Virus record (IMG/VR): IMGVR_UViG_3300030098_004828
Span: 124,001-188,000 of that record
Reading direction: 5' to 3' (one strand)
DNA: 64,000 bases
Under the pieces are notes generated by a model. The model searched no databases. It was not told the DNA's origin and saw only the letters and a list, made by a program, of their open reading frames with translations. The stretch's first letter is position 1. Each line of letters opens with the position of its first letter. The position numbers and the translations under genes are program-made. Below are positions 11,534 to 58,800 of this stretch, one piece after another.

Positions 11534-11726
11534 ATGACACTATTTATTAAAAAGGTTTGGAGTAAATGCTTTGATTGTAGCACCTAAATTAATTAGTACA
11601 TTTACTCCTTACCTACCCACTCAAATAGAATATACAGTCTCCTGTACACTCATCTTTATCCACTATTATTAAATAGTGGTATTGTTAGGGTGACACTTAT
11701 GTCTCTTTTAAACTTTATTACTTAAT

Positions 11727-12606: not shown

Positions 12607-12714
12607 TTATATGGTTAAACTTGCTATTATTATTGCTATATGTATTAATAACATTATAATGTATAATACACATAGTATTGGGTTTTCTTTATACCATCTT
12701 TCAAATTGTTTCAT
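12607..12714 (-). CDS. 35-aa membrane microprotein
   Basis: MKQFERWYKENPILCVLYIIMLLIHIAIIIASLTI; the longer start in the ORF track runs through a regulatory element. Confidence 0.5.
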   Translation of the reverse strand: MKQFERWYKENPILCVLYIIMLLIHIAIIIASLTI

Positions 12715-12761: not shown

Positions 12762-12813
12762 ACAAGGTGACGAAGGAACCGCAGGAAGTCAACAACAGGT
12801 GAACGAAGTGAAC
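12762..12813 (-). promoter_or_regulatory. ACAAGGT + GNA-loop DNA hairpin element (variant copy)
   Basis: Plus strand GGT-GA-C-GAA-G-GA-ACC (12766-12780) and GT-GA-AC-GAA-GT-GA-AC (12799-12813). Confidence 0.55.
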
Positions 12814-12833
12814 ACCATAGCAGAAGAAGAGAA

Positions 12834-12956
12834 TTACTCCTCTTCCATATCTTCTAAGATACATTGTTGACAAATATGTACTTCATCACAAGTACATGTC
12901 AATTCAGGATTTATTTTATAGAGTTCATACATAAACTCTGCTTCTTCAAACATCAT
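12834..12956 (-). CDS. 40-aa acidic Cys-rich (Zn-binding) microprotein
   Basis: MMFEEAEFMYELYKINPELTCTCDEVHICQQCILEDMEEE. Confidence 0.6.
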   Translation of the reverse strand: MMFEEAEFMYELYKINPELTCTCDEVHICQQCILEDMEEE

Positions 12957-13073
12957 ATGATATAATTTTAAATTATTGATATACTGCCGGAACCATTTGC
13001 AGATGTGTATAGCAACGCGCCACTCACTATACTAAATCCGGCTTTGTTTTAAACAGTTTACTCTGTTATGATA

Positions 13074-13475
13074 AATAGTACAATGAGTGATGAGCAAACT
13101 ACTCTCATAATGATGACTCTTGGGATTCCCCCTTAGATATTCATTAACCCTATGCAGGTGATTAACCTTTATACTTATACTCAATTAACAATGATTAGTT
13201 GCCAATATCATACATCATATAGCTCTGTTAAGAACTTCATAAGTTGTCAGGGCTTTGAGATATCCCTATAACATTAATGATTTTCAAAGTAAGTTGTTAA
13301 TAAAATTACTTTGTTCATCATACTTCTGCTTATACACTACATACGACAATACAATCATTTGATTATACTATCAGGCATCACACCAAACAGAATGCACTAA
13401 CCCCTTTGAAAAAAAGATTTATTGTGCGACACTCAGGATACTGTGGTAGCTAACCGTTGTATCCTTTGTACTATT
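13074..13475 (-). ncRNA. Putative ~400-nt structured ncRNA
   Basis: No ORF; 10-bp closing stem 13074-13083/13466-13475; nested stems; 12-bp hairpin 13345-13372 with three G-U pairs only on the minus strand. Confidence 0.6.
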
Positions 13476-13625
13476 AATTTTATGTATTGGAATTATATGA
13501 CCAGAGAGATAATATTACACACTTACTATGAAAATATATCAATGTAAGTATACTGACCATTATAATTCCAAATGAGGTTGCGGATACTATTATCCTATAG
13601 AACAAATAACAAATACTACATAGTA

Positions 13626-13790
13626 CTAATACCTATTCTTATGTTTATTCTTTCTTGTATACTTTTTCTTATTACGAACTACTGTATGTGTAGTACAAGA
13701 ACTCTCTATCATCTCTTTAGCCTGTCTTCTACCTGCATTTCTCTTGATTTTATCAATATCTGATTGTTTGAGTGTTATACTTAGTTTCAT
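13626..13790 (-). CDS. 54-aa basic peptide with ArfA-like C-terminus
   Basis: MKLSITLKQSDIDKIKRNAGRRQAKEMIESSCTTHTVVRNKKKYTRKNKHKNRY. Confidence 0.6.
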   Translation of the reverse strand: MKLSITLKQSDIDKIKRNAGRRQAKEMIESSCTTHTVVRNKKKYTRKNKHKNRY

Positions 13791-13999
13791 AGCTATATTA
13801 TTAATAATGTGAAGTGAAAATATTTAAGTGGTAAAAAGTGGTAATAATAGACTATTTGAGGTATCATTCAGAAACTTTAACACACAAACAAGAATAAAAC
13901 ACTATAAAATGTGAACACATATCAAATCAATGGAGTGTTGAGGGATTTTGAGTGGATTATTCTTATTTGAGTGGATATTTCATTGGATTAAACCCTGAA

Positions 14000-14452
14000 T
14001 TAACAAGGTTTAGTCCAATATAAGTTAGGAACAGGTATTTCATTACCATTTTCATCTAACTTGTTGTTTCCGTTTTCATCTCTTTCTACAACAGGATTGT
14101 CCAAATCTATCATAAAACCTTTTAGGAATTGGTCAGATTGAAACTTGTAGTTTATGTCTGATGGATTAATTGCAACTTTTTTACCTGATGCGTCTTCAGT
14201 GTAAAATGTATGTAATCCATAAACTACTTTACCATTACCACGGTTGAACAACTTAAGTTCTTTACCATCTGCTGTCTTATAAGTGATACCTCCGTCAAAC
14301 ATATCATCAGATGCGAAAGATACATTTCTAACTGTGATTGATTTTGACTTTGGATTATCAGGATAAGAGTGAAAGTATGAACCTGTTGTTGGTACTGTTA
14401 TGTCTTGAGTGTTTGTTTTAGTAGTGTTCTCTACTGTAGAATTGTTTTCCAT
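14000..14452 (-). CDS. Hypothetical (putative early) protein
   Basis: ORF track; preceded by the conserved hairpin element. Confidence 0.75.
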   Translation of the reverse strand: MENNSTVENTTKTNTQDITVPTTGSYFHSYPDNPKSKSITVRNVSFASDDMFDGGITYKTADGKELKLFNRGNGKVVYGLHTFYTEDASGKKVAINPSDINYKFQSDQFLKGFMIDLDNPVVERDENGNNKLDENGNEIPVPNLYWTKPC

Positions 14453-14483
14453 AATATTTAATTTAGTTTAATTTATATCATTA

Positions 14484-14551
14484 TTGAACAAGGTGGATAG
14501 GAAGAGAAGAGCGAACGCAGTGAGCTGGAACGGAGCGAAGCGGAGTGACAG
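14484..14551 (-). promoter_or_regulatory. ACAAGGT + purine spacer + GNA-loop DNA hairpins (candidate early promoter)
   Basis: ACAAGGT 14488-14494; AGC-GA-AC-GCA-GT-GA-GCT (14510-14526); CTG-GA-AC-GGA-GC-GAA-GC-GGA-GT-GA-CAG (14525-14551). Confidence 0.65.
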
Positions 14552-14645
14552 ATGTAGTACAAATACCACAGTGATAATAGTAATGATAGTGAGAAGTGGG
14601 TGGGTAATAATGTAGGGTGGGATAATTAAAAGGAAGAAAGCCCAA

Positions 14646-14903
14646 TTATGAGCTTCCGTCCTTATCTTTAACTTTTGCTTTAATCTCTTTACCTAACATA
14701 AGGTCTTTAACAAGCAATTCTTTATTAATCTCCATTTTAGCTTTGGCAATTAATAACTGTTGTCTTTTAGATTTGATAGTTTTTGTAATATCTTCTATTT
14801 TCCATTCAGCCTTCTCAAGCTTTGCAAGTTTTAATTTTGCTTGTAATAATTTAATATTTTGTTCAATAGCAGTAATGTTAGTATAGTCATAATAATAATC
14901 CAT
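14646..14903 (-). CDS. Basic coiled-coil hypothetical protein
   Basis: ORF track, 85 aa. Confidence 0.65.
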   Translation of the reverse strand: MDYYYDYTNITAIEQNIKLLQAKLKLAKLEKAEWKIEDITKTIKSKRQQLLIAKAKMEINKELLVKDLMLGKEIKAKVKDKDGSS

Positions 14904-14948
14904 AATAATAATAATTTAAGTTTATAAATAAAGAAAAAAAACCAGCTA

Positions 14949-15116
14949 CTATTTCTTCACTGGTTTTTCCCGTCTTGCCAAATAACAAAACACGTGTCCT
15001 TTAGTGTGAGGACAAGGAGTTATTGACTGGACTTTGAATACATACTTATGTCTCCATTGATTTAATGTCTTTTGAACATTAATAGATGATAAGTGTAAGA
15101 TTTGATTTTCCCACAT
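14949..15116 (-). CDS. 55-aa hypothetical protein
   Basis: MWENQILHLSSINVQKTLNQWRHKYVFKVQSITPCPHTKGHVFCYLARREKPVKK; below the track cut-off; preceded by the conserved element. Confidence 0.65.
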   Translation of the reverse strand: MWENQILHLSSINVQKTLNQWRHKYVFKVQSITPCPHTKGHVFCYLARREKPVKK

Positions 15117-15145
15117 AGTTTAAAATTTTAAAGTTAATATCAGTG

Positions 15146-15187
15146 TTGTACAAGGTTGTTAAGAATAGAAATATGAGCGTAGCGAAT
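15146..15187 (-). promoter_or_regulatory. ACAAGGT + purine spacer + GNA-loop DNA hairpin (candidate early promoter)
   Basis: ACAAGGT 15150-15156; AT-GA-GC-GTA-GC-GA-AT (15173-15187). Confidence 0.65.
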
Positions 15188-15570
15188 TAATAATAATACG
15201 GAAAACACCCTCCACAAGTTCCTTTGTAACCTAAGTTACTTTATCAGATGTTTTTACTGGCTAAACCGTATTATCATAATTAGAAAGTTACACAAACAGT
15301 GACCCTTTACCCAGACCAATTAGGAATGGTAAACTCAAGATTTAATCATCACATTGAGGTGTGTTTGTTTAATCATTACTGTACACATAATGAAGATAAC
15401 TTTCCAAATAACTATAATGTCATATCAAATAACTTGACAAAGACAAAGAATAAAATAGTACAAATTAACATAATATAAAATTTTAATTACTTATGTCTAA
15501 TGTCCCACAGTGTACATGACCATACATACAATCAAGTTGATGGTGAGAGGTACACTATTTGAGTGGGTTA

Positions 15571-15723
15571 TTAGAATTCAATTGAGTAAGTTGAATGTAG
15601 TTTATCAATCTTGTCTTTGATTAATTGGATGTCTGATGTATTCTCAGGACAATAGTCCATTAACCAATTGAGTTCAAGTTCAAGATTGTTTAATTCAATT
15701 ACAATGTTTTTAATATTTGACAT
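15571..15723 (-). CDS. 50-aa hypothetical protein
   Basis: ATG at 15723 (MSNIKNIV...); first gene of the minus-strand arm. Confidence 0.6.
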   Translation of the reverse strand: MSNIKNIVIELNNLELELNWLMDYCPENTSDIQLIKDKIDKLHSTYSIEF

Positions 15724-15745
15724 AAGTATAAGTTTTAGTTCATGA

Positions 15746-15809
15746 GTGTACAAGGTTGTAGGATGAGAAGGAACCCGTCAGGGTTCTGACCCGTAGCGTA
15801 GCGGAGGGT
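15746..15809 (-). promoter_or_regulatory. ACAAGGT + purine spacer + GNA/GNNA-loop DNA hairpins (candidate early promoter)
   Basis: ACAAGGT 15750-15756; GAACCC-GTCA-GGGTTC (15771-15786); ACCC-GTA-GC-GTA-GC-GGA-GGGT (15789-15809). Confidence 0.65.
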
Positions 15810-15895: not shown

Positions 15896-15930
15896 GGGGG
15901 GGCAGGGGCTGTTGGCCAACGGGCCGGGGG
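15896..15930 (+). other. G-tract cluster (potential G-quadruplex) at the strand switch
   Basis: G7-CA-G4-CTGTTGGCCAAC-G3-CC-G5. Confidence 0.55.
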
Positions 15931-16096
15931 AGTTTTATGTAGAACCTTCTCACAACTTAAAACATACAAAACTTTTATATAGGGTAAAATTTCACTATAT
16001 TATATATAAGAGGCCCTGGACCATTTTCCTATAAAAAGGTTTGTGAAAGGATCCCTCCCGAGTGTAAATTAATTATTAATGTAAAAATTAAATGTT

Positions 16097-46875: not shown

Positions 46876-49800
46876 ATGGCACGAAAGAAACAACAACAGA
46901 GACCGGATGTCCCTAGACCTGAATTACAAAATACATCTAATGTAGATACAGATGTATTTGTAAAAGGTATGACTAAGGATATGGATGTTGCCTTGACCAA
47001 TAAAGAAAATTGGACTCATGCTGTTAATGCTATTAATAATTCTCATCAAGGTGATGCAGGAACTATAGGAAATGAACCTGCTAATTTAGGATGTGCAGCA
47101 ATACCCTATACCATTATAGGTATGATTCATCTATATGGTGATAAATGGGCTATATTTTCAACAGATGATGTTAATAGTCAAATAGGAATATTTGATGATA
47201 GTCATTGTAAATATGATATTGTTGTTAATGATCCTTGTTTAAATTTTAACAAACGTTATTTAATTACAGGAGCTTCTAAGGAAAGTTTTGAGTGTCAGTG
47301 GTGGGTATACTGGGATGATGGTATAAATCCTTCTAGAGCTCTTAATACAGCGGATGTACCATATATTCAAACTAGTTATACAGAAGATGATGGATGTGTT
47401 ATATATGAAGATCAAATACCTTTAAGACTTGATTGTGAAAAAATAAGATTAAATCCTATCCTTGATGTTCCATGTATTAAGTTGTCAAAAGCAAAAGATG
47501 GTGGTCAATTACAAAATGGATCTTATGAAGCTTATATTGCATATGTAGTAGATGATAATAAAGTAACGGATTATTATAAATCTAATATACAAACTCTTTG
47601 GGATCATCAAGATAATGCAGGATCACTAGATATAGATATTGAAAACTTAGATAAACAATTTGAAAGTTATCAATTAGTTATCTATACAAATGCAGGTATG
47701 AATTCATATGCTGTAGTAGTAGGAACATATAGTACAGAACAATCTCATATTAATATTGATATGATAGATATGTCTGCTTCTACACCAGGTCTTGTAGATC
47801 AATTACCATTATATACTCCTATTTTTGAAAAGTCTGAAAAGATGTATGCGGTTAATGACTATCTTCTAAGACAAGGTCCCACTACAAATTTTGATTTTAA
47901 TTATCAATGTCAAGCTAATAATATAACAGCTAAATGGGTTTCTGTAGAGTATCCGGCAGATTATTATGTAAAAGGTGGTAACAAACCAACTTTTATGAGA
48001 GATGAACAATATTCTTTCTTTATAAGATTTGTTTATAATACAGGTAATAAATCTTCTTCTTATCATATACCAGGACGTGCTGCTGTTGGTATACCTGCAA
48101 ATGATATGGGTGTTCCTCCTGATATGAATCAAACATTATCTGGTGAAGCCGGGTTTCCAAATTGGAAAATAAATAATACTGCATTTCAAACAATGTCTAT
48201 AGATGCAGGTGGTGGTGAAAATATAGGAACATATACAGATGATGGAGGATTAATTGTTGCAAAAGGATGGATGGGATATTGGGAATCAACAGAAAGATAT
48301 CCTAATGATCCAGTTAGATGGTGTGATCTATGTAACACTCCTATAAGACATCATAAATTTCCTGAAGAAGGAACAAGTATTTGGACACAAAGAAACAATC
48401 CAAATAATCAATTTATATATGTATTAGGTGTAGACTTTGATAATATAGAATGGCCAAGATATATAGATAAGGATGGTTTTGATGTACCAATACCAAATAT
48501 AGTTGGTTATGAAATACTAGTGGGATCTAGACAAGGTAATAAATCTATTATAGCAAAAGGTCTTGCTAGAAACATGAGAAGGTATGATATTCAAAATGCT
48601 CAAGGTGAACGTGGTATTGCTGATGCTGAAGGTGGTGATGATAACTTAGAAGGATTAATGCCTAACTATCCATTTAATGATTTAGATAGAGATCCATATT
48701 TATCACAACAAGAAGTTATAAGACAAAGTGATTATGTACCTTATGGTCCTAATTATACAATGCATAATATATTTACATTCCATTCTCCAGATACTTCGTT
48801 TGATAGACCTTTCTTAAGTCCATCTGAAATTAAAAGTTATGGTGTAACAGGAGGATATTCTTTAGGTAGATTTAAAAGATCAGAGGATCATCCTAAACAT
48901 AAATTAATAAGAGATATTGCAGCTATTATTGCAGCTATTATTGGTGCAGGTTATGCTATTATGGAAATGCGTGGTGAAAAGGTTCAAAAAGTAAAAGGAT
49001 CTAAAGCATTATCTATTGGTCAAGATCCAGGACCATATAATCAATCAGATGCACTTAAAGATGAATCAACTATTGATACTACTGCTGGTACAGGTACAGG
49101 TGGTGTAAGTATTGCAGGTGTTTATGCTTCAGGGGGTACAGGTACAGGTGGTACTGCTAATGTTGATATGGATGTTAGTAATGATTCAGGACTTGAAGGT
49201 ACAAACCCTGCTGCTACCGATGATGATGGAATTACTAATCAAGACCTACAAAATATAAGCCCTACTCTTCCTCCTGATCCTAGTGGTGTTGATACTGATA
49301 CAGGTATAGAAACAGTAAATGGTGGTGGTGCAGCTCCAGGTATGGCTGGTAATATAAGTATAACTGATCCAGGTCCTGTTGGTTTTATACCTCCAAGTAT
49401 TGTTACTCAAACATTAACAGCAGATGGTGCTACTGCTGATTATCAGTTAACTTATGGTCCTAGTACATCTCAAGCACAATTAAATGCATATGAAAATATG
49501 CAAGCTTTTAATACCGCACAAGAAAATGATGCACCAGGAACTCCAGCAGGTCAAGAAGGTCAACAAGGATCAGGTGGTACAAGTTCAGGTAATCTTAACA
49601 TTATATCAGGTATTAATATTAATGATATTGCTAATGGATTTCAACCAACACAAGAAAGTGAATTTTCAATGTCTACTACACCTATAGGTGATGCAACTAA
49701 TCTTATTCTTACTGGTGGTCTTCCTAATAGTGTTTCAGGTGCAGAAGAAGATTTCTTACATGATATAAAAAGTAAGGGTGATAATGCTGCAATGCAAACA

Positions 49801-52800
49801 ACTGGTTATACAGGATCTAGTAGAGATGTTGAAATGAAAGGGAGTAAGTATAAATCATTACCAGGATTTTTACAAATAATGTTTAAGACATATTCATTCT
49901 TAAACTTCATGGTTGAAGGTGGTGAAGGAATTATAGAGATGATTTATGAATTTATGAATCCTCAAGACTATGCATATAAATATAATTCTTATGGTATGTA
50001 TAGTGGTAATTTTATTCCACAAATGGGTGATAGACATAGAATAGAATGTAAAAGAGCTAGATACTTATCAAGTGCATTTCAAAATCTTGGACCAGAATAT
50101 AAAATAAATAATTTACATAGACCTAAAACAGTTGTTTTACAAGGAGTTGAAAATCTTGTATCTCCTTCTTCTCCACAATACTGGAGAGATAATTCAAAAT
50201 ATGTATTAGGAGAACTTCCTTCATGGGTATTGCAAAATCCTACACAACCTGTAACAACTAAAATATCCGCTCACTATGTAGGATTAAAATATAGAATAGA
50301 TAATCAATATGGTCAAATACAAAGTATAAGACAACTACCTGTAAAATGTGCAGGGATTTTTAGAAACGCAGCTTTTCCTAGTTCTGCTGATGTTAATAAT
50401 GCAGAACCAAATGAAACTATATGTACTACTTGTGATGAAGAGACAGGACTTATATTTGATGAAAATACTAGATTTAGATCAGAAGTCATATTTGGTGGTG
50501 ATTGTTTCATTAATAGATATAGTGAAAAAGTTATAATGCCATTCTTTTGGGATTTCTTAAAAGGAGAACCAGATGGATATACTTTTGATTATAGATTGCA
50601 TCAAAATGTTCCTTTTGTTAGATTCTGGTATAATTCACAAAAATATGAATTATCTGGATTTGTTAGACCTATTACAGATTTAAGTTTTTCTTGGTTATCT
50701 GATCCTAGTGATCCAGGATTACCTTCAGCTCTTCATAACTTAGATAGAATAGGTAGTGGTAACTATAATGCTATAGATGAAGGATGGTTATCTGGTACTC
50801 CTAATAATGAAGATGATTGGTGGATGACTGCAAACTCAGAAAGTCAATCAGGTATGTTTGGTGATGGATTTGGTGGTCTAGGTGGTGGAACAGGTTGGGG
50901 TTCAGGTACTGATGCTAATACTACTGGTACAACTTATACAGATGGTGGTCCACCTGATACATCAGGAGATAGTGTATCACAATCAACTTCTAACTGGGCA
51001 AGTTCAGGAGGACAAGCAACAAAATCTAATGGAATCTTTACATTAAAGAATGCTTATTGCTATTTACATTCTAGTGGTATAAATGAATTCTTTGTAGAGT
51101 CAGAATTAAACATGGCTCAAAGAGATTGGGATGATAAACCTGCAGGTAGACATTATGATTGGCAAGAGTTTACAGATGTTAATGCATTATTTCATGCAGA
51201 TATTATTAAAGATGGAAACTTTTATAAGTTTGATAGATCTTTAATGTGGAGAAATTTAGGAAGTCAATTATTATCATACGGTTTTGTACAACCATTAAGT
51301 TATGATCCAGTAGTTGCTGAAGAGTGTATGACACATTATCCAAAAAGAATAATGTATTCATTAAGAGCTCAGGATGAAGCTAAAAAAGATTTTTGGAGAG
51401 TTTTCCTTCCATTTAATAAAGAAGACTTTAAAGAGCCTGTAACTACTATTAAACCTATAAATAAAACAGGTGCTGTAATATTATTTCCACATAGATCTCC
51501 TCAAATATGGCAAGGTGTAGATACATTACAAACAGAAGGTAACACTAAAGTTACAATAGGAGATGGAGGTTTATTTGCTGGACCAAGACAAAATATTACA
51601 AATTCAGATCTTCCAAATGAATATGGTTCTTGTGAAAATATGCTTAGTGCAATTAATACACCAGCTGGTTTATTTTATATATCACAACAACAAGGTAAAA
51701 TATTTAACTATACGGGCGGTTTAGAAAATATTGCTGATAGAGGAATGAAACAATGGTTTAATAATTTTCTTCCTTCTAGACTATTAATGGAGTTTCCTGA
51801 AATGGAAGGTTCTATAGATGCAGACAATCCAATTATGGGTATTGGAACTCAATCAGTTTATGATGCTAAACTTGATTTAGTTTACTTTATGAAAAAAGAT
51901 TATGCATTATGTGATCATTCAGGATGTATACAATGGACAGAAGATGATGGATTTGTTTATAATAATACATTATGTAATGATGCAGATCAAATAGCTTCAT
52001 GTCCTGATGGTTATACATTGTATGAAGCTGGAGATGTGCATCCTGGAACAGGAGAAGTTTTAACAGAAGATACTTGTTGTAATATAGTTAGAGATGATTA
52101 TCAAGAGTTTGAAGAAGCTACTATGGATTGTAATACAACAGTTTATGTAGTCCCTGAAATTTTTAATTTTGAAAGACTCCCTAATGATGAAGTTTTAACT
52201 AAGCATGAAAAAAATACAGTTCTTTTTAATGTATCTGATGATGTATTTGAAAACATCAGAGAAAAGAAACCTATGAAAGTTAAACTAAATATTCCTTTCA
52301 TAGATGGTAGAAGAATAAATTTAACTTTAAAGAACTTTGAACCTCATAGAAAAAATACTAGAGTTTTAACAAAAAGTAAAGATGGAACTGTAGAAAGAAA
52401 TTATGTACCTAATATACGTGCATATAGAATAAGAAATAAAGAAATACTTAAAAATGGTAAAGAAGTAAAAGCTACTGGATCCATTATTTTCTCTAGAAAA
52501 GCATTTACAGGTTTCATAACAATAGGTAATCAACAATATGAAATTAGAAGGCGTGGTCAAAATAAATACGCATTAATACATTCTTATGATGTTAAGGAAA
52601 GTCCTTTATTTGCTTGTGATACTAACACATCACACAGCATTCCTGATTCAGTTAAATTAGAAGATTTACCAAGAACAGCAAGACAACTTGCTAAAAGTGG
52701 TAATAGTTCACCTGATCATTGTATTAATTTAGCTGTTACAGTTGATTATTATACATATGATTTTCTTGGTCAAAATTATCAAGACACAAGTGATTGGGCA

Positions 52801-55800
52801 ATGATGTTAGTTGCAGCAGTGAATGAAATATATATGAATGATCTTAATATTTCAATTACAAGTGATTTTATTTATATTTATACAGATGAAAGTGTAGATC
52901 CATTTGCAGATTGTTGTGGAAGCAACCAAAATGATATGCTTCCGGTACTTAGAGATCAATGGGATGGTGATGAACCAGATTTTGATGGTGTTATTAGAAG
53001 TATAGCTACTTTATTTACTGCTAGGGGTTGTGGTGGAGTAGCATATACAGGTGGATTATGTTATAGAAATAATTGGGGTTACAGTGTTAATGGTTTTTGT
53101 GGAAATAACATGCCTTCAGGCACACTTCCAATACAAGGACAAACTACAGAAGGTTATGATATAGAAGATGGTTTTGTGAATCTTACTAATTCATTAACTG
53201 TAAAAATAACAGCTCATGAAATAGGTCATAATGTTGGTACATTACATACACATGATTGTGTATGGGAGCCAGATCCAGTTTATGGTTTTGGTGGATTTAC
53301 AGGTGATACAGGTCAAATTGATATTGGTGGTAACCTAGTTTATTCTATGTTTATAGATAATTGTGAAGACGATTGTGATGAAACAGCAACTGCTGATTGT
53401 GGATCAGAACCTATTGATTCAAGTTGTTGGCCATCTCCTTGGCCTATGCCTTATCAAGAAAATTTAACTAATACAGCATTTGAGTATACTACTTTAATGG
53501 GTTATAATGAAAATTTAGCTTTTCAGGGTTGTATAACTTATGATCAACTTAATGGGATTTTAGGATTTCATCCAATAGTTATGGAACAAGCTATAAACCC
53601 ATGGGTAGATGATGTACAAGCTAATAGTGGTACTTCATGGAATCTTTTTGGAAATCAAGAAGGTGAAACAAATTGTTTATCTTGTGCTGATGTAAATGGT
53701 GAAAATGGTGGAGGTGATGATGATCCTATTTATGAATGTGATGACTTACAAGAATTTTTAGATGCTACAATTAATTCTGAATTAGGATGGCTTGTTGAAC
53801 AAGGTGGATCAGGAGGTTATACACCAACTCAATATTGTAATTATTGTGATAATCCAGTTGCAGATAATATTAATGCAATAGAAGGTTCATTAGATCTATG
53901 TAATTGTTGTACAGGAGGAGAACTTATAGTGGAAGGTTGTACAAATCCAAATGCAACAAACTATAATCCTAATGCTAATGTAGATGATGGATCTTGTGAA
54001 ATTGTAGGTTGTACAGATCAGTTTGCAACTAACTATAATCCAAATGCAAATATGACATGTATGGGTGAAACCGGTTTTATAGAAAATGGTTGTTGTCTTT
54101 ATGATTATAGTTGTAATAATTATTATTTATGGGTTGATGCTACAATTAATTCACAATTAGGTTATGATTGGACTCCAAGTGATTATTGTACTTTTTGCTT
54201 AAATCAAGAATTTTATGCAGATGATCCTATAATGACTCTTGAAAATGCAACAGAATTCTGTAGTTGTTGTAATGGAGAAGATGTAGAGATTTTTGGATGT
54301 ATGGATTCAGAAGCAAATAACTTTAATCCATTTGCAACTACTCCATGTAATGGAACACAAGGAGAATATGGACCTACAATTTCAATTATAAACGGTACAT
54401 TTAGTGGAGGAATTACTATACCAGAAGGAATAGAAAATGTAAATGGAGATTCTGTTCCTGCTGGATATTATTCTCCTACATTTTATTTACCACCAGATGG
54501 ATGGCATGCATGTAAAAATGCTAATTTTAATCCTATTATGGGACAATTAGGTGAAGACTGGCCTAATATTACTACATATGCAAATTCTGGAGGAGGCACT
54601 GGTGGTGGTGGTGTAAACGTTGAAACTGGAGAATGTTGGAATTTTGTTTTACCAGCTTCAGATTTCTTTGGTGATGATAGCTTACCTGATTCTGGACCAC
54701 ATGGTAATATTACACCAGATAATTATACTGATTGGTTCTTTGATAATCTAGGGGATCCTGGAATATGTGGTGGATATTCCAGTATAATAGCAAATGATAT
54801 AATTAATTCAGGTATAAGTACTCACGCATATGGAGATGGTTTTATGGGTATGGCTTGGTCTCCAAGTTTTCGGGAAGATATGCCTTATTATGTTTTTGAA
54901 ACTGGTCAGGAATATGATGCAACTTGGGCGTATGAATGGCATAGAGAAGGAGTGGGACAAGAATTAAGTAGTCCAATGATAGCAAATGTTGAATATACAA
55001 TGAGTGTTGTTGTAGCTAATTCATCTGGTGGTTATATATTAGATGGTTATGAGTGGGAAGCTGCTGGTGTAAGAATATGGGGTGGTAATTGTGCTTGTCC
55101 TAATGATGATAATGGAGGTGAATTATTATGGGAGTCAGAACCTCAATCTGGAAGTTCCGATGTACCTATGGAATGGGTTACACGTACTGGAACATTTACA
55201 CCAACTCAAAATTTTACACATATAACTATAGAACCAGGTAATGGTGGTGAAACATGGAATGGACCATCTACACCTGGTAATGAATGGAATGGACAAACAA
55301 CTAATGGAGAGTCAGGTATATATGGTGCCGGTAATGACGTTTATATATTTTTAGATTATGTTAGTGATATAACTCCAACAGCTATATTAGGTGAAGATAA
55401 TGATTGTTGTGAATATGGATCTGAGGAAGAAGAAGAAGGAGGAGGAGAAGAAACATTAAGTTGTGAACAAATTCAAGAAGATCCTCAAGGTTATATTGAT
55501 ACATTAATTAATGATCCTATAGGTTTAAATTGGCCTCCAATTGAATTTTGTATGTTCTGTAATGGAAGTATACAAAATGAAGAGGTTGCTAGTATTGGTG
55601 AAGTTTGGAGTGCATGTAGTTGTCTTTGTACTGAAGAACCTAGACCTTTACCTGATTGTGATGACATGTGGACTTTTATTAATGATAATATTAATTCACT
55701 GGGAGTTAATTATAATTGGACAGTAGATAATTATTGTACATTTTGTTTAAATCCTTCATTATTTGGAGTTGTTCAAGATGTTGAAGGTGTTTTAGATTAT

Positions 55801-58800
55801 TGTGATTGTCCACAATGTGAGAATACTCCTTATGATCCAAGTAATGAAACAATAGATTGTGAATGTTTTTGTCCTGATGGTTATGATTTAGTATTTAATG
55901 ATCCACCAACTTATACATTAGCAGATCCAGAAATAGATTGCGTTGCTGATGTTATACCTCTTCTTGAAATGCCTACAGTTGAAATATGTGATACTACATT
56001 AGCTGAAAATGCAACATTTGTAACTAACCCAGGTTTAAATGTAGACGGTGGTACATTTGGTGAGATTGGACAAAATAAAACACCATCTCCTTGGATAGTA
56101 TGTATGAGAGGAAGTAATCAAGAGGCACCAGGTTATTATCCTGATGGCTTTTGTTATGACGGAATGGTAGAAGATGGTGTACAATATGATATGACATTTA
56201 CAACCGACACATGGACAGGACAAGGTAATGCTCTATCTGTAGATAATTTGGATTATGTAATGGATCCTTTTAATCAATATGCTATAGATCCTTATGAAGG
56301 AGATGCTTATGTTGGAATGCTTCATAGTTTTAGTTGTGATGGTCTATGTAGTGAAGGTTGTGATGTTGGTCTATGGCAAGAAGGAATGGCACAAGCATTA
56401 GAAGATGCAGATGGAAATCCTACATTTTTATTTGCAAACCAACAATATGTTGGTAAATTCTATGCAACACAATTAGTAGGTTGGAATACACGTCATAGAG
56501 GATACATAGATGAGGAAGAATTTTTAGAAGACGGTATAACTCCAAATCCAACTTTTGGTAATTTTATCTTAAATAATCCTTGGACTTATCCATTAGAAGA
56601 AAATTATCAAGAGCAAGGTGATTTTGCAGGATCTGTAGGATCTGCAGCTGGTGGGGATGCTGTTGATGCAGAAGGAAACCCTGTATCACACAGGATAACT
56701 CCTCAAATAGAAATATGGGGTGGTACTGATCAATGCGGAGTTCAAGGTGAAAACGGTTTATATTTAGGTGGAGAATTTAATTATGAAGGTAATTATAATT
56801 CTGAATTATTATGGAGTTCAGGTCCTATAATGTCTGCAGATAATTGGACAGAATATAATTATGAGTTTACTCCTACAAATGATTGGGCATGGATACATAT
56901 AAGAGTTCAATTACTAATAGATGGAGTTCCAGCAAAAACAGATGAAGATACCACTAATGGAGTTCCAGCAAGAGATAAAGCTACGTATGTAGTTATAGAT
57001 GGTTTTGTAGCTCCAACAGAAGATGTTAAATGCTGCACATGTCCTGAAGGTTATCAAAGAGTATTAAATGATGGAATATATCAAACACCTATATCAGAAC
57101 AAGAGTGTATAAAAGAACATGATGCGGATGGTGCTTACTTAACTTATTCAGATGAGTTTGATGTAATATGTGTAAAGTGGGAGCCTACAATGAATGACTT
57201 AGTATGTTTACAGCAATGGTCAGATATTACAGGTGATTGTGTAGATCCTCAATATGAAGATGATGTAGATCTTATTGAATTAACAGACGAACAATACTTT
57301 AAAGATGTTTCATGGACAGTAAGCTATGATCCAAAAATAAAAGGTTGGATTTCATTCCATGATTGGCATCCGGAACTTAGCATGCCAAGTTTAAATCACT
57401 TCTTAACAACTAATACTTTTGAAGTTGATGATATTTATTGTCCTCCTGGATGGGAATTAAATGATGGAATTTGTTGTCAAAATATTGTTGGTAGTTTTGA
57501 AGGTACTGAAATTATTGAAGAAGAAGATGTTACTATAGATCAAAATCCTGATGAACCTAGAGAAGAATTTTGTCCTATAGATATATATATAGCATTAGAT
57601 TTTTCAGGTTCAAATTTTTCCGTGCCAGGATTTCAAGGTAGTGGGGGTTCTGTTTTTAATGATTACTTTATTAGGGAATTTGTAGATACATTAGATATGC
57701 AAATGGATGGTTCAATTAGTGGAAATATGACAAATGCAACTAATCAAATACAAGTTGGTGTGGGTGCATGGACATCAATGTTACCAATGAATCTAGAACC
57801 TTTGTGTCCTTGGGGTGATTCTGATAGTGCTGGTATTATAAATCAAAATGTAACAGGTTTAACTAATAATGCATTAGAAATATATAATACAGCAAATAGT
57901 ATGATAAATAGTCAGCAGGCTATGTATGGTATAGCGGCTACTACTGGACCTGGAGATACTTATCAAGCGGCTATGTCAGTAGCTTATAATGAATTTAATA
58001 ATACTGTAGGTTCTTCACCTTTAGGTGATAGATCTGGTCAAAATGGTTATCAAAAACATTTAATTATTGTTACAGATGTAACATCTATTTCTCCTTGTAA
58101 TAATAATTGTACTTGTTGTGGTACTGGTAATCCTTATCCTGATCAATCTATGGATTATTATTTACAACTAGCACAAGCTGAAGGATTTACAGTTCATGTA
58201 GTTTGGTCAGGAGCTCCAGGGGGTCAAAGTCTCCAACAAATAATAGATAGAACTGAATGTTTACTTACTTATTCAAACGGACAACTTTATCAAATTGGTG
58301 TAAATAATATAAATGATACAGATGCTGTTGCTGCTAATACACAAGCTGTTGCACAAAATATTGCACGAGATTTAGATTGCACTCTTCCTCCTGATCCTAT
58401 AGAATGCTTATGCCCTGATGATACTTGGACAATGGTTTATTCAGCTGATGGTGGTGATACTTTTACATTAGAAGAAAATCCTGATCCAACTGCAGATTGT
58501 GAACCAGGTAGAACAGCTGTATGTAGAAAAATAAATTGTTATTGTGATGATTCACAAGTAGAATCTGATTTAACTGATATAGATATTACTACAACGGGTG
58601 AATGTAGTGATATTTATGAAGTGGGAGAAGAAGACTATGTTAATCCAAATCCTCTTTTCTGTAGTTATGATTCTGAATATTGTACAACAGGAAGTAATAT
58701 TAGAGGAGGATTATGGAGACATAATTATAGATGTAATTTATTTTCTAATTATTATGATGTTCAATATGGTTGGGAAATTGAAATGGTTGAATCAGTTGGT

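Follow-up and report, generated by a model that had tools for sequence, protein, structure and literature searches.

Candidate early-promoter cassettes with template-strand mini-hairpins in a marine crAss-like phage

The early promoters P1-P3 of coliphage N4 are clustered near the start of the early region and are read by the injected virion RNA polymerase, a T7-like single-subunit enzyme that is inactive on relaxed duplex DNA. P1 (GTTGC-GAA-GCAAC) and P2 (GAAGC-GGA-GCTTC) form small GCGNAGC hairpins on the template strand upstream of early genes, with uninterrupted stems of 5-7 bp, and transcription starts 11 nt from the loop centre after an AAAA linker (PMC13434306, PMC13492108). Mini-hairpins of the GCGNAGC or GCGNNAGC type also sit at the primase origins of G4, St-1 and alpha3 (complementary-strand origins) and in RSF1010 ssiA, which is read by RepB', where they lie on the strand that is copied into RNA and exclude SSB; d(GCGNAGC) melts at 76.5 C and binds SSB poorly (PMC13037366). 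[quoted passage not shown] Its polymerase gp66 transcribes single-stranded or denatured DNA but not duplex DNA and drives rifampicin-resistant early transcription of the replication module; no common motif was found upstream of early transcripts, and no promoter motif is known for gp66 (bioRxiv 10.1101/2020.03.07.982082). The P23-45 tail-fused virion two-barrel RNAP uses a strongly conserved AT-rich motif just upstream of pre-early start sites, with no hairpin component reported (bioRxiv 10.1101/2022.12.01.518664). In T4-type phages, PeSL (promoter-early stem-loop) cassettes reportedly place a stem-loop, an ordinary RNA terminator, and a sigma-70 type early promoter before small, strain-variable early genes, and are gained and lost between relatives (Arbiol et al. 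2010).

We analyzed a 64,000-nt stretch of DNA (the window; positions 124,001 to 188,000 of IMG/VR record IMGVR_UViG_3300030098_004828) from a marine phage that is a distant member of the crAss-like phages. A preliminary description of the window had reported three intergenic copies and one variant copy of a motif followed by a purine spacer and a hairpin on the template strand of minus-strand genes. This observation was confirmed and proved stronger than first described. Three units (14472-14551, 15134-15187 and 15734-15809) and a degenerate one shared a box of roughly 25 nt, a 12-14-nt purine spacer and one or two plus-strand hairpins, read directly from the sequence and built from C-GNA-G triloops, tandem G-A mismatches and GCGNAGC cores (Table 1). 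The 12-mer TGWACAAGGTKG occurred without mismatch at 14485, 15147 and 15747, and once inside a gene at 53796. ACAAGGT occurred 16 times against 7.65 expected, and no shuffle reached 16. The repeat was longer than previously reported, since a 23-25-nt block TTwAkwTCAnnnnTGwACAAGGTkG started at 14472, 15134 and 15734. The degenerate copy shared only ACAAGGTG and the hairpins, not the left half of the box. The ATGs of the genes following units 1, 2 and 3 were 36, 34 and 27 nt from the A of ACAAGGT, the purine spacers were 14, 14 and 12 nt after the 12-mer, and the proximal loop centres were 25, 24 and 22.5 nt from the T of ACAAGGT, all close to the values first given. The proximal hairpin of unit 1 had not been listed before. 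The hairpins sat on the template strand of real, conserved minus-strand genes.

Table 1. Features of the four units and of the genes that follow them, with observations in related contigs (L103, L107, L108, L109 and L110 are contigs of relatives)
Position	Strand	Feature	Sequence	Observations
15734..15758	-	Box of unit 3, the first unit of the minus-strand block	CAACCTTGTACA-N5-GAACTAAA (gene strand)	Direct repeat family; 14 orthologous or paralogous instances with consensus CCTTGTWCA-N5-GAWMT
15759..15770	+	Purine spacer of unit 3	TAGGATGAGAAG	Length 12-14 nt in all units and orthologues
15771..15786	+	Proximal hairpin of unit 3	GAACCC-GTCA-GGGTTC	Folded by both DNA and RNA energy models; at the same site CAAGAG-CTTG-CTCTTG in L103 and GTGAG-CTTG-CTCAC in L110
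15789..15809	+	Distal hairpin of unit 3, GCGTAGC core	ACCC-GTA-GC-GTA-GC-GGA-GGGT	In L108 the loop is GGA and the rest is unchanged
15134..15158	-	Box of unit 2		Same direct repeat family
15173..15187	+	Hairpin of unit 2	AT-GA-GC-GTA-GC-GA-AT	Orthologue in L109 is GC-GA-AC-GTA-GT-GA-GC; all three variable pairs are swapped and still pair
14472..14496	-	Box of unit 1		Same direct repeat family
14511..14525	+	Proximal hairpin of unit 1	GC-GA-AC-GCA-GT-GA-GC	L109 changes A-T to C-G; L110 in addition changes G-C to A-T; loop changes from GCA to GAA
14525..14551	+	Distal hairpin of unit 1	CTG-GA-AC-GGA-GC-GAA-GC-GGA-GT-GA-CAG	Minimum-energy fold with RNA parameters; loop GAA, GCA or GGA in orthologues and inner 21 nt invariant; outer CTG/CAG stem not maintained; 21-nt core recurs in 8 other viral contigs
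12762..12813	+	Degenerate unit, 48 nt upstream of the ATG at 12714	ACAAGGTG followed by three hairpins
12766..12780	+	Hairpin of the degenerate unit	GGT-GA-C-GAA-G-GA-ACC
12779..12785	+	Hairpin of the degenerate unit	CC-GCA-GG
12799..12813	+	Hairpin of the degenerate unit	GT-GA-AC-GAA-GT-GA-AC
15571..15723	-	50-aa gene after unit 3		Conserved in L103, L107, L108 and L110
14949..15116	-	55-aa gene after unit 2		Intrinsic-terminator-like stem with a T run overlaps its 3' end; cassette missing in L103 and L108
14000..14452	-	150-aa gene after unit 1		Orthologues 76-100% identical
12607..12714	-	35-aa hydrophobic peptide gene downstream of the degenerate unit

To estimate how often such elements arise by chance, the window was compared with expected counts and shuffled sequences. 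GCGNAGC occurred 5 times against 0.93 expected, and 3 of the 5 were in the units, whereas SCGNAGS occurred 13 times against 3.95 expected. A scan for GNA hairpins with purine mismatches and at least 4 Watson-Crick pairs gave 7 hits, all on the plus strand and 5 of them in the units, while shuffles gave a mean of 2.0. However, nearest-neighbour folding with either DNA or RNA parameters did not rate these hairpins as unusually stable; Z-scores ranged from +1.06 to -1.93 and only the perfect 15771-15786 stem was robust. Their stability rests on published work on short oligonucleotides. The units occurred only at the first about 3 kb of the minus-strand block, with none in the remaining 12 kb of that block in the window or in 10 kb further left, and each unit ended 11-20 nt before an ATG.

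Conservation of the hairpins in relatives and the presence of an RNAP gene in the genome had been named beforehand as tests, and both were found. Sister species from Tara and JGI metagenomes kept the hairpins through compensatory base-pair swaps. Only the middle loop base was varied (GAA/GCA/GGA in one loop and GTA/GGA in another), the G-A mismatches never changed, and three unrelated perfect stems occupied the 15771 site. In the alignment (A2) of the 15-nt module, 24 of 24 cells paired and 3 of 4 pairs changed on both sides, which 0 of 500 shuffles reached, and slid controls paired at 17-50%; the paralogous modules in this alignment were picked because they fold, which inflates that statistic. 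Orthologous comparisons alone gave five compensatory swaps and no disruption, although the outer stem of the 14525-14551 hairpin was broken in three relatives without compensation. In the box, the 14 instances kept CCTTGTWCA and GAWMT while the 5 nt between them varied at constant length, a pattern that fits a recognition site of T7-promoter size. The box did not fit the sigma-70 or Bacteroidetes consensus, whereas the plus-strand genes of the phage used a different, host-type class, GTATATTATWTATA, which resembles the host-RNAP middle promoter of phi14:2. The RNAP gene lay outside the window, as had been stated. A 5459-aa protein (P0096) starting about 6.6 kb beyond the window end carried the motif GSDFDID at residue 4131, and its family profile hit phi14:2 gp66 in three collinear stretches with E 9e-18 and no other phi14:2 protein.

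A second crAss-like lineage showed related elements. A 40%-GC contig (L113/L121) with the same TerL and portal PHROGs as the window had a different box before its small minus-strand genes, and plus-strand hairpins with the same GC-GA-GC-GNA-GC-GA-GC modules upstream of three of five boxes. Two of the five boxes had no hairpin, so hairpins are not obligatory for the box there. Closer relatives of the window phage (L004, L007 and L011) had neither box nor hairpins, and no GNA/G-A modules were found in the 37 kb of phi14:2 examined. The same modules also occurred in Microviridae intergenic DNA and in other unrelated phage contigs, sometimes inside coding sequence. They are therefore not specific to a crAss polymerase, which points to a more general single-strand signal, possibly read by host enzymes.

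Compared with N4, the hairpins shared the template strand, the position upstream of minus-strand genes near the start of the putative early region, the clustering and the GCGNAGC core, but the geometry and the enzyme were different. The N4 stems are uninterrupted, whereas here 2-bp steps were separated by G-A, GGA/GGA or GTA/GGA mismatches, and often two hairpins were present. Instead of a short linker, the purine spacer and the 25-nt conserved box intervened, so that the hairpins were 22-25 nt from ACAAGGT and about 38-40 and 58-59 nt from the conserved GA taken as the likeliest start, much further than in N4. The predicted enzyme is a gp66-like two-barrel polymerase with DFDID, unrelated to that of N4, although by analogy with gp66 it would, like the N4 enzyme, be carried in the virion and inactive on relaxed duplex DNA. 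The genome plan was the same as that of phi14:2, with long non-coding stretches among the first early genes and a gp66-type polymerase encoded after the tail and muzzle genes, but here the motif is explicit. For the box, the pre-early motif of P23-45 is a precedent, although its sequence is unrelated. In contrast to the primase signals, which act on genuinely single-stranded genomes or plasmid strands, the hairpins here belong to a double-stranded genome and were tied at fixed distance to a box and a gene start. In contrast to PeSL cassettes, the box was not sigma-70-like and the hairpins were strand-asymmetric purine structures.

The preliminary description had interpreted the elements as early promoters for a crAss-like virion RNA polymerase, convergent with N4, or else as single-strand signals used during injection or replication, and this interpretation was partly supported. 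Our preferred reading, held tentatively, is that these are early-promoter cassettes at the head of the replication, or early, gene block, N4-like in physics but not in geometry or enzyme. In this view, the bipartite box would position the start of RNA synthesis, most likely at the conserved GA, 18-27 nt before the ATG. The hairpins could form only on the plus (template) strand; they would be held together by C-GNA-G loops and sheared G-A pairs, so that the complementary pyrimidine strand could not fold. In negatively supercoiled or transiently unwound DNA they would snap out, resist single-strand-binding protein and hold open a bubble exposing the adjacent template strand, and the injected gp66-type polymerase, an enzyme type that transcribes only single-stranded DNA in vitro, would then bind the hairpin and box and start. 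The analysis itself established the elements, their strand, their selection for pairing, their fixed spacing to the box and to gene starts, and the presence of the polymerase gene. That the box is a promoter (from position and conservation only), where transcription starts, which polymerase uses it, and that the hairpins act as extruded DNA were inferred. If correct, this reading gives a concrete candidate for how the injected phage RNA polymerase finds its start sites.

A serious rival, although less favoured, is that the hairpins are single-strand initiation signals for a primase, either the DnaG-like enzyme of the phage or that of the host, marking where RNA primers are laid on the plus strand near a replication origin at the strand-switch region. 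The box would then be an ordinary promoter that happens to lie beside them, or its transcripts would double as primers. In addition to the mini-hairpins at known primase origins, the same two-hairpin tandem occurred in intergenic DNA of a microvirus (L125), and a covarying copy with AC/GT changed to AT/AT occurred in another microvirus (L124) on the gene-sense strand, which is the packaged strand. Microviruses encode no polymerase, so host enzymes must read their signals. The window encodes a DnaG-type primase, a DnaB helicase and a DnaA-like HTH protein, the cumulative GC skew had its minimum at 12-14 kb, and all hairpins were on one strand. However, the GC-skew switch coincided with the switch of coding strand and is not independent evidence for an origin, and no hairpins were found on the opposite strand for the rightward fork. 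The spacing of hairpin to box and of box to ATG was fixed in every cassette and orthologue, and cassettes came and went with their small genes, which is how promoters behave rather than an origin.

A more doubtful possibility is that the units are mobile regulatory cassettes of the PeSL kind, whose stem-loops act mainly as insulators or terminators, or as recombination landmarks between small early genes, with the purine-mismatch style as a by-product of composition. The small genes next to the units were strain-specific, without homologues in 80 TerL relatives, and whole cassettes were present or absent between sister species, as listed for unit 2 in Table 1; the 85-aa gene was likewise missing in L109. 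In L121 the hairpins lay just after the stop of the upstream gene and had a perfect 8-bp outer stem that would also fold in RNA. On the minus-strand RNA of the window phage, however, the hairpins would have UC/UC and UCC/UCC mismatches, a UNC loop and no U run. Canonical terminators already followed the upstream genes, unit 3 had no upstream gene to terminate, and the G-A mismatches were invariant rather than drifting or repaired.

It also seems unlikely that the box is a promoter for the host RNA polymerase, perhaps with an alternative sigma factor or an activator, and that the upstream purine-rich repeats are duplex binding sites for a protein, not hairpins. The hairpin sequences can be read as runs of pentamers with a 5-nt period of the form (GNAGC)n (GGAAC GGAGC GAAGC GGAGT in unit 1 and GTAGC GTAGC GGAGG in unit 3), some copies carried TGnTATAAA-like sequences at the downstream end of the box, and intrinsic terminators of the host type were used in this block. 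But the extended -10 resemblance was not conserved among the 14 instances, in which only GA was, the spacing between TTGTWC and the A/T hexamer was 8 nt, the host-type promoters of the phage looked different, and compensatory stem changes and three unrelated stems at one site are not expected for duplex protein sites.

Least likely, the hairpins work as RNA in plus-strand transcripts, for example antisense or small RNAs: RNA parameters recovered the proposed folds for units 1 and 3, a copy in contig L115 lay in the sense orientation between a perfect sigma-70-like promoter and a terminator, and the microvirus copies were also in the sense orientation, but there was no Rfam match, no plus-strand promoter or terminator bracketed the units in the window, the fixed spacing to a minus-strand box and ATG would be unexplained, and the orientation relative to genes differed between contexts, which fits a DNA-level, strand-specific role better.

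The genes on the minus strand ran from the left end of the window to the strand switch and included a DnaG-type primase, an AAA_24 ATPase, a DnaB-type helicase, a DnaA-like HTH protein and an SNF2 helicase, whereas the genes beyond the switch were on the plus strand and included the large terminase (phrog_6681), the portal (phrog_6547) and the major head protein. [quoted passage not shown] The best relatives of the portal were Leptolyngbya phage Lbo-JY46 and csAssE-Sib, followed by many Crassvirales and Cellulophaga phages, all below 33% identity, and the phage, which is uncultured, is therefore a distant crAss-like phage. Identical or near-identical contigs came from Tara Oceans and JGI marine metagenomes. 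The source contig in IMG/VR, of which bases 124001-188000 were analyzed, is 245,646 nt, while the Tara assemblies of the same phage are 96-104 kb and relatives are 110-126 kb. The box pattern occurred only once per contig, so the long contig is not a simple two-fold concatemer. No tRNAs were found.

The 12-mer TGWACAAGGTKG was exact at three sites, where it formed the right-hand part of a 23-25-nt repeat (the box), and a minus-strand ATG followed each copy. To the right of each box was a purine spacer of 12-14 nt, and after it came the hairpins. The repeated hairpin element claimed in the preliminary description was thus confirmed, with one hairpin added that had been missed there, the proximal hairpin of unit 1. 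All hairpins were on the plus strand and the genes were on the minus strand. The heptamer GCGNAGC occurred 5 times in 64 kb against 0.93 expected, and three of the five were in the units; GCGAAGC and GCGTAGC (twice) were among the forms present in the window. A scan for GNA-loop hairpins zipped by purine mismatches found 7, all on the plus strand and 5 of them in the units, whereas shuffles gave about 2. Nearest-neighbour folding of both strands with DNA and RNA parameters gave no significant stability and did not single these hairpins out, consistent with the statement in a review that standard models cannot account for mini-hairpin stability, and folding energies were therefore not used as evidence. 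Searches of Rfam at both gathering and permissive thresholds gave nothing relevant.

Positions of the features in the window, and of related elements in other contigs where stated
Feature	Position	Strand	Remark
Minus-strand genes, including the replication genes	left end to 15723	minus	
DnaG-type primase gene	506-1486	minus	
Plus-strand genes, including terminase, portal and major head protein	from 16097	plus	
GC-skew minimum	12-14 kb		coincides with the coding-strand switch
Exact copies of TGWACAAGGTKG	14485, 15147, 15747		
Starts of the 23-25-nt repeat	14472, 15134, 15734		
ATGs following the boxes	14452, 15116, 15723	minus	
Proximal hairpin of unit 1	14511-14525	plus	GC-GA-AC-GCA-GT-GA-GC
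Distal hairpin of unit 1	14525-14551	plus	outer stem CTG/CAG
Perfect stem of unit 3	15771-15786	plus	6 bp, loop GTCA
Only change in the units among population variants	14551		G>T
Promoter-like motif GTATATTATWTATA	15995, 27639, 33301, 34887	plus	looser copies at 18.85k, 38.96k, 43.45k
Candidate large structured RNA	13066-13481	minus	no ORF, roughly 400 nt
G-rich element	15905-15960; L004 2080-2130; L007 1540-1590; L011 160-215; L060; L070		
Short repeats after stops of minus-strand genes	13823-13845, 13947-13981, 15558-15573, 11617-11625		
Promoter-like site TAGCTATATTAT	13793	plus	
Long non-coding stretches	15190-15570 and 12957-13625		380 and 670 nt
4217-aa ORF	46876-59529		reprolysin-like domain at residues 1950-2130
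Perfect promoter and following stretch in L115	L115 1520-1850		

To examine conservation, the region was first compared with databases. A megablast against GenBank phages found nothing, and a search of IMG/VR with the strict 25-nt box pattern found only the source contig plus chance coding hits. The small genes beside the units had no homologues in 80 loci that share the terminase (TerL), and these relatives lacked the box; the nearest of those loci (L004, L007 and L011) had neither box nor hairpins. Population variants of the same phage from Tara samples were 99.8-100% identical and uninformative. The useful material came from sister species, of which L103 was reached through a 96%-identical terminase and L106-L110 through the 150-aa gene, at 100 to 76% identity. 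Together with the window they gave 14 boxes and their hairpins.

On the gene strand, the conserved letters of the box were CCTTGTWCA, then five free positions of constant number, then GAWMT, and the ATG followed 18-27 nt after the GA. One orthologue read CCTAGT. The resemblance of some copies to an extended -10 element was not conserved, and neither the sigma-70 nor the Bacteroidetes -33/-7 reading was conserved across the 14 instances; the spacing excludes a sigma-70 -35/-10 pair. The plus-strand genes of the same phage used a different and uniform class, GTATATTATWTATA, also found in looser forms. This promoter-like motif, (T)nGTATATTATWTATA, was often preceded by canonical hairpin-plus-T-run terminators and resembled the middle promoter P070 of the model crAss-like phage phi14:2, which host RNA polymerase reads.

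The hairpins were conserved by compensation in the sister species. In the proximal hairpin of unit 1, the inner A-T pair became C-G in L109 and L110, the outer G-C became A-T in L110, and the loop went from GCA to GAA. In unit 2, the window had AT-GA-GC-GTA-GC-GA-AT and L109 had GC-GA-AC-GTA-GT-GA-GC, so all three variable pairs were exchanged and still paired. Across six versions of the 15-nt module, all 24 cells paired and three of four pairs changed on both sides; no shuffle of 500 reached this, and slid controls paired at 17-50%. Although the paralogues in that set were chosen because they fold, the orthologues were chosen by position, and they alone gave five compensated swaps without a disruption. 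At the perfect stem of unit 3, three unrelated perfect stems occupied the same place: GAACCC/GGGTTC, CAAGAG/CTCTTG and GTGAG/CTCAC. The middle bases of the loops varied (GAA, GCA and GGA in one, GTA and GGA in another), whereas the G and A of the loops and every G-A mismatch were invariant. The outer stem of the distal hairpin of unit 1 was not kept. Selection therefore acts on pairing and on the purine mismatches. Only the plus strand can form such structures, because its complement would carry pyrimidine-pyrimidine mismatches.

The 4217-aa ORF in the window was tested as the RNA polymerase and rejected. Its relatives carry the crAss muzzle domain (PF25731), it holds an internal reprolysin-like metallopeptidase domain, its only DxDxD motif (NDLDRD) had no support, and it had no similarity to gp66, the virion RNA polymerase of phi14:2; its homologues variously carry von Willebrand A domains. 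Downstream of the window came genes of 828, 847 and 1168 aa and then a 5459-aa gene, whose product, P0096, had the DFDxD two-barrel catalytic motif as GSDFDIDT at residue 4131, against GSDFDIDK in gp66; by analogy with gp66 its polymerase part would span roughly residues 3200-4900. A profile built from 43 family members matched gp66 in three collinear stretches (E 9e-18 in a six-protein search) and matched no other phi14:2 protein; the identification of P0096 as a gp66-like polymerase is inferred from this motif and profile match. The statement in the preliminary description that the gene lies outside the window was correct, and the absence of an RNAP gene from the genome, which had been named beforehand as a refuting condition, was not observed. 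In phi14:2 this enzyme transcribes single-stranded but not duplex DNA in vitro and drives rifampicin-resistant transcription of the early, replication module, and no motif was found upstream of its transcripts. A search of 37 kb of phi14:2 for comparable hairpins found none.

The template-strand oligonucleotides of phage N4 used for recent structures carry GTTGC-GAA-GCAAC (P1) and GAAGC-GGA-GCTTC (P2), which have the same GCGNAGC core, a three-base purine-rich loop closed by C-G, as found here. As in N4, the hairpins lie on the template strand, upstream of genes presumed to be early. Like gp66, the enzyme of N4 is inactive on relaxed duplex DNA, and the extrusion of the N4 promoter hairpins depends on supercoiling and SSB. 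However, N4 promoter stems are 5-7 uninterrupted Watson-Crick pairs (5 bp in the P1 and P2 oligonucleotides), whereas the stems here were 2-bp steps interrupted by G-A or GGA mismatches, and the only perfect stem had a GTCA loop. The start of N4 lies 11 nt from the central loop base, on a short single-stranded linker, whereas here the conserved box began 12-14 nt beyond the hairpin foot, so the geometry probably differs; if RNA starts at the conserved GA, the loop centres lie at about -38 to -40 and -58 to -59. Two hairpins were frequently present. N4 promoters are read by a T7-like single-subunit virion RNAP, but the polymerase found here was gp66-like with DFDID, and no T7-like RNAP turned up in the parts of the genome examined. 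The interpretation in the preliminary description was supported only in part. The locus would work like N4 in physical principle but is not a member of that family.

The invariant 21-nt core of the distal hairpin, GAACGGAGCGNAGCGGAGTGA, had exact matches in eight further IMG/VR stretches (L113-L120, two of them sharing identical flanks) of 40-63% G+C, whereas its reversed sequence, which has the same composition and periodicity, had none. The contexts were mixed. In L114 and L116 the core encoded the last six codons and the stop of a gene, which in L116 is a methyltransferase, and in L120 several GCGNAGC units were clustered. In L115, a perfect TTGACA-17-TATAAT promoter was followed by about 290 nt with no ORF listed at the 60-aa cut-off, which contained the 21-mer and, 190 nt later, its near reverse complement just before a T run; it may be a small RNA or a hairpin-bracketed insert. 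Contig L113/L121 is a second crAss-like lineage, with the same TerL and portal PHROGs as the window (E values of 4e-169 and 4e-158) and no BLAST-level similarity to the window proteins. Its layout was the same, in that small minus-strand genes were each preceded by a conserved box that differed from that of the window. Upstream of three of the five boxes there were plus-strand hairpins, TATAGCAA...TTGCTATA, that enclosed GC-GA-GC-GNA-GC-GA-GC modules, while two boxes had no hairpin. A blastn of 14508-14553 against GenBank phages hit unannotated intergenic DNA of rodent-gut Microviridae (PQ006226 and PQ006546). Of the two microvirus loci, L125 carried the tandem GCGAACGATAGTGAGC-TGGAAAGGAGCGGAGCGACA, and L124 carried GGAATGGAGCGAAGCGGAATGAG, which is the distal hairpin with its AC/GT step changed to AT/AT; both lay on the gene-sense strand. 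The 15-nt module was otherwise absent from the 1.4 Mb of sequence searched.

Four observations argue that the units are promoters and the hairpins part of them: the fixed architecture of hairpin, spacer, box and ATG; its restriction to the head of the presumed early block; the contrast with the host-type promoters of the phage; and the recurrence in a second crAss-like lineage with a different box. The single-strand preference of gp66-type enzymes and the N4 precedent make the virion polymerase the most economical reader. This reading is favored over each alternative but only tentatively, as it remains somewhat less likely than not. The architecture, the strand and the selection on pairing came from the sequence comparisons themselves, whereas the promoter function, the start site, the early timing, the enzyme that reads the units and the extrusion of the hairpins from the duplex are inferred, and the hairpins were dispensable for some boxes in L121. 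The presence of the hairpins in Microviridae shows that the hairpin “word” is older and broader than crAss polymerases and may be read by primases. The strongest alternative, although unlikely, is a primase or origin signal. Mini-hairpins of the GCGNAGC or GCGNNAGC type, which are known at primase origins of G4-type phages and in RSF1010 ssiA, on the strand used as primer template, were present here, and related copies occurred in single-stranded DNA phages; the GC-skew minimum coincided with the coding-strand switch. Less likely still are insulators like the PeSL cassettes of T4-type phages. As in those cassettes, a stem-loop lay directly upstream of the putative promoter and flanked small variable ORFs, but PeSL promoters are of the sigma-70 type and the box lacked conserved -35 and -10 elements at workable spacing. 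A host-RNAP promoter with duplex protein sites appeared slightly less probable again, and an RNA-level role is very unlikely.

No paper describing a promoter or hairpin signal for crAss-like virion polymerases was found in our literature search. The kind of element, a template-strand mini-hairpin start signal, is known from N4 and G4, but the zipper architecture, the box and the association with a two-barrel polymerase would be new. The promoter specificity of crAss-like virion RNA polymerases is an open question, and this locus offers short, defined sequences, in which 70-90 nt of the plus strand would hold the hairpins, the spacer and the box and for which natural compensatory variants exist. 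If the hypothesis holds, two unrelated injected polymerases would have arrived at the same physical trick, and early promoters could be annotated in the very abundant crAss-like phages. If the primase reading holds instead, it would extend the G4-type mini-hairpin origin signal to large double-stranded phages and link those phages to Microviridae, which may share the same hosts. A broader possibility, more doubtful than the promoter reading itself, is that the two-barrel, QDE-1-like virion RNA polymerases of crAss-like phages find their early start sites through extruded template-strand mini-hairpins (GNA loops zipped by sheared G-A pairs) plus a lineage-specific box, convergent with the unrelated T7-like enzyme of N4. 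In this view, the same hairpin “word” would be a general mark for starting RNA on single-stranded DNA, shared with Microviridae origins.

Other elements were found around the units. The candidate large structured RNA was 87-88% identical in L004 and L109, although neighboring proteins were only 76-85% identical. RNAalifold on three sequences gave 132 pairs closed by a 10-bp long-range stem, with compensatory changes in 15 pairs, and the element would lie in the early transcript, reminiscent of the abundant early non-coding RNAs of phi14:2. A G-rich element, AGGGGGnA...GGGGAGCAGAAC..TAGGACCC, was conserved in the divergent region of several relatives, just upstream of the first minus-strand gene and beside the first plus-strand promoter, and could be an origin, a packaging site or a clade-wide early signal. 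Short repeats occurred just after the stops of minus-strand genes, TTTGAGTGGATTATTC three times and AAGTGGTAAAAAGTGG, and similar AAGTGGTA..TGTGG sequences occurred in L004 and L007, beside a plus-strand TAGCTATATTAT promoter-like site, although TTTGAGTGG was overall not over-represented in the window. Two unusually long non-coding stretches lay between the small early genes, and the first of them was absent together with unit 2 in L103 and L108.
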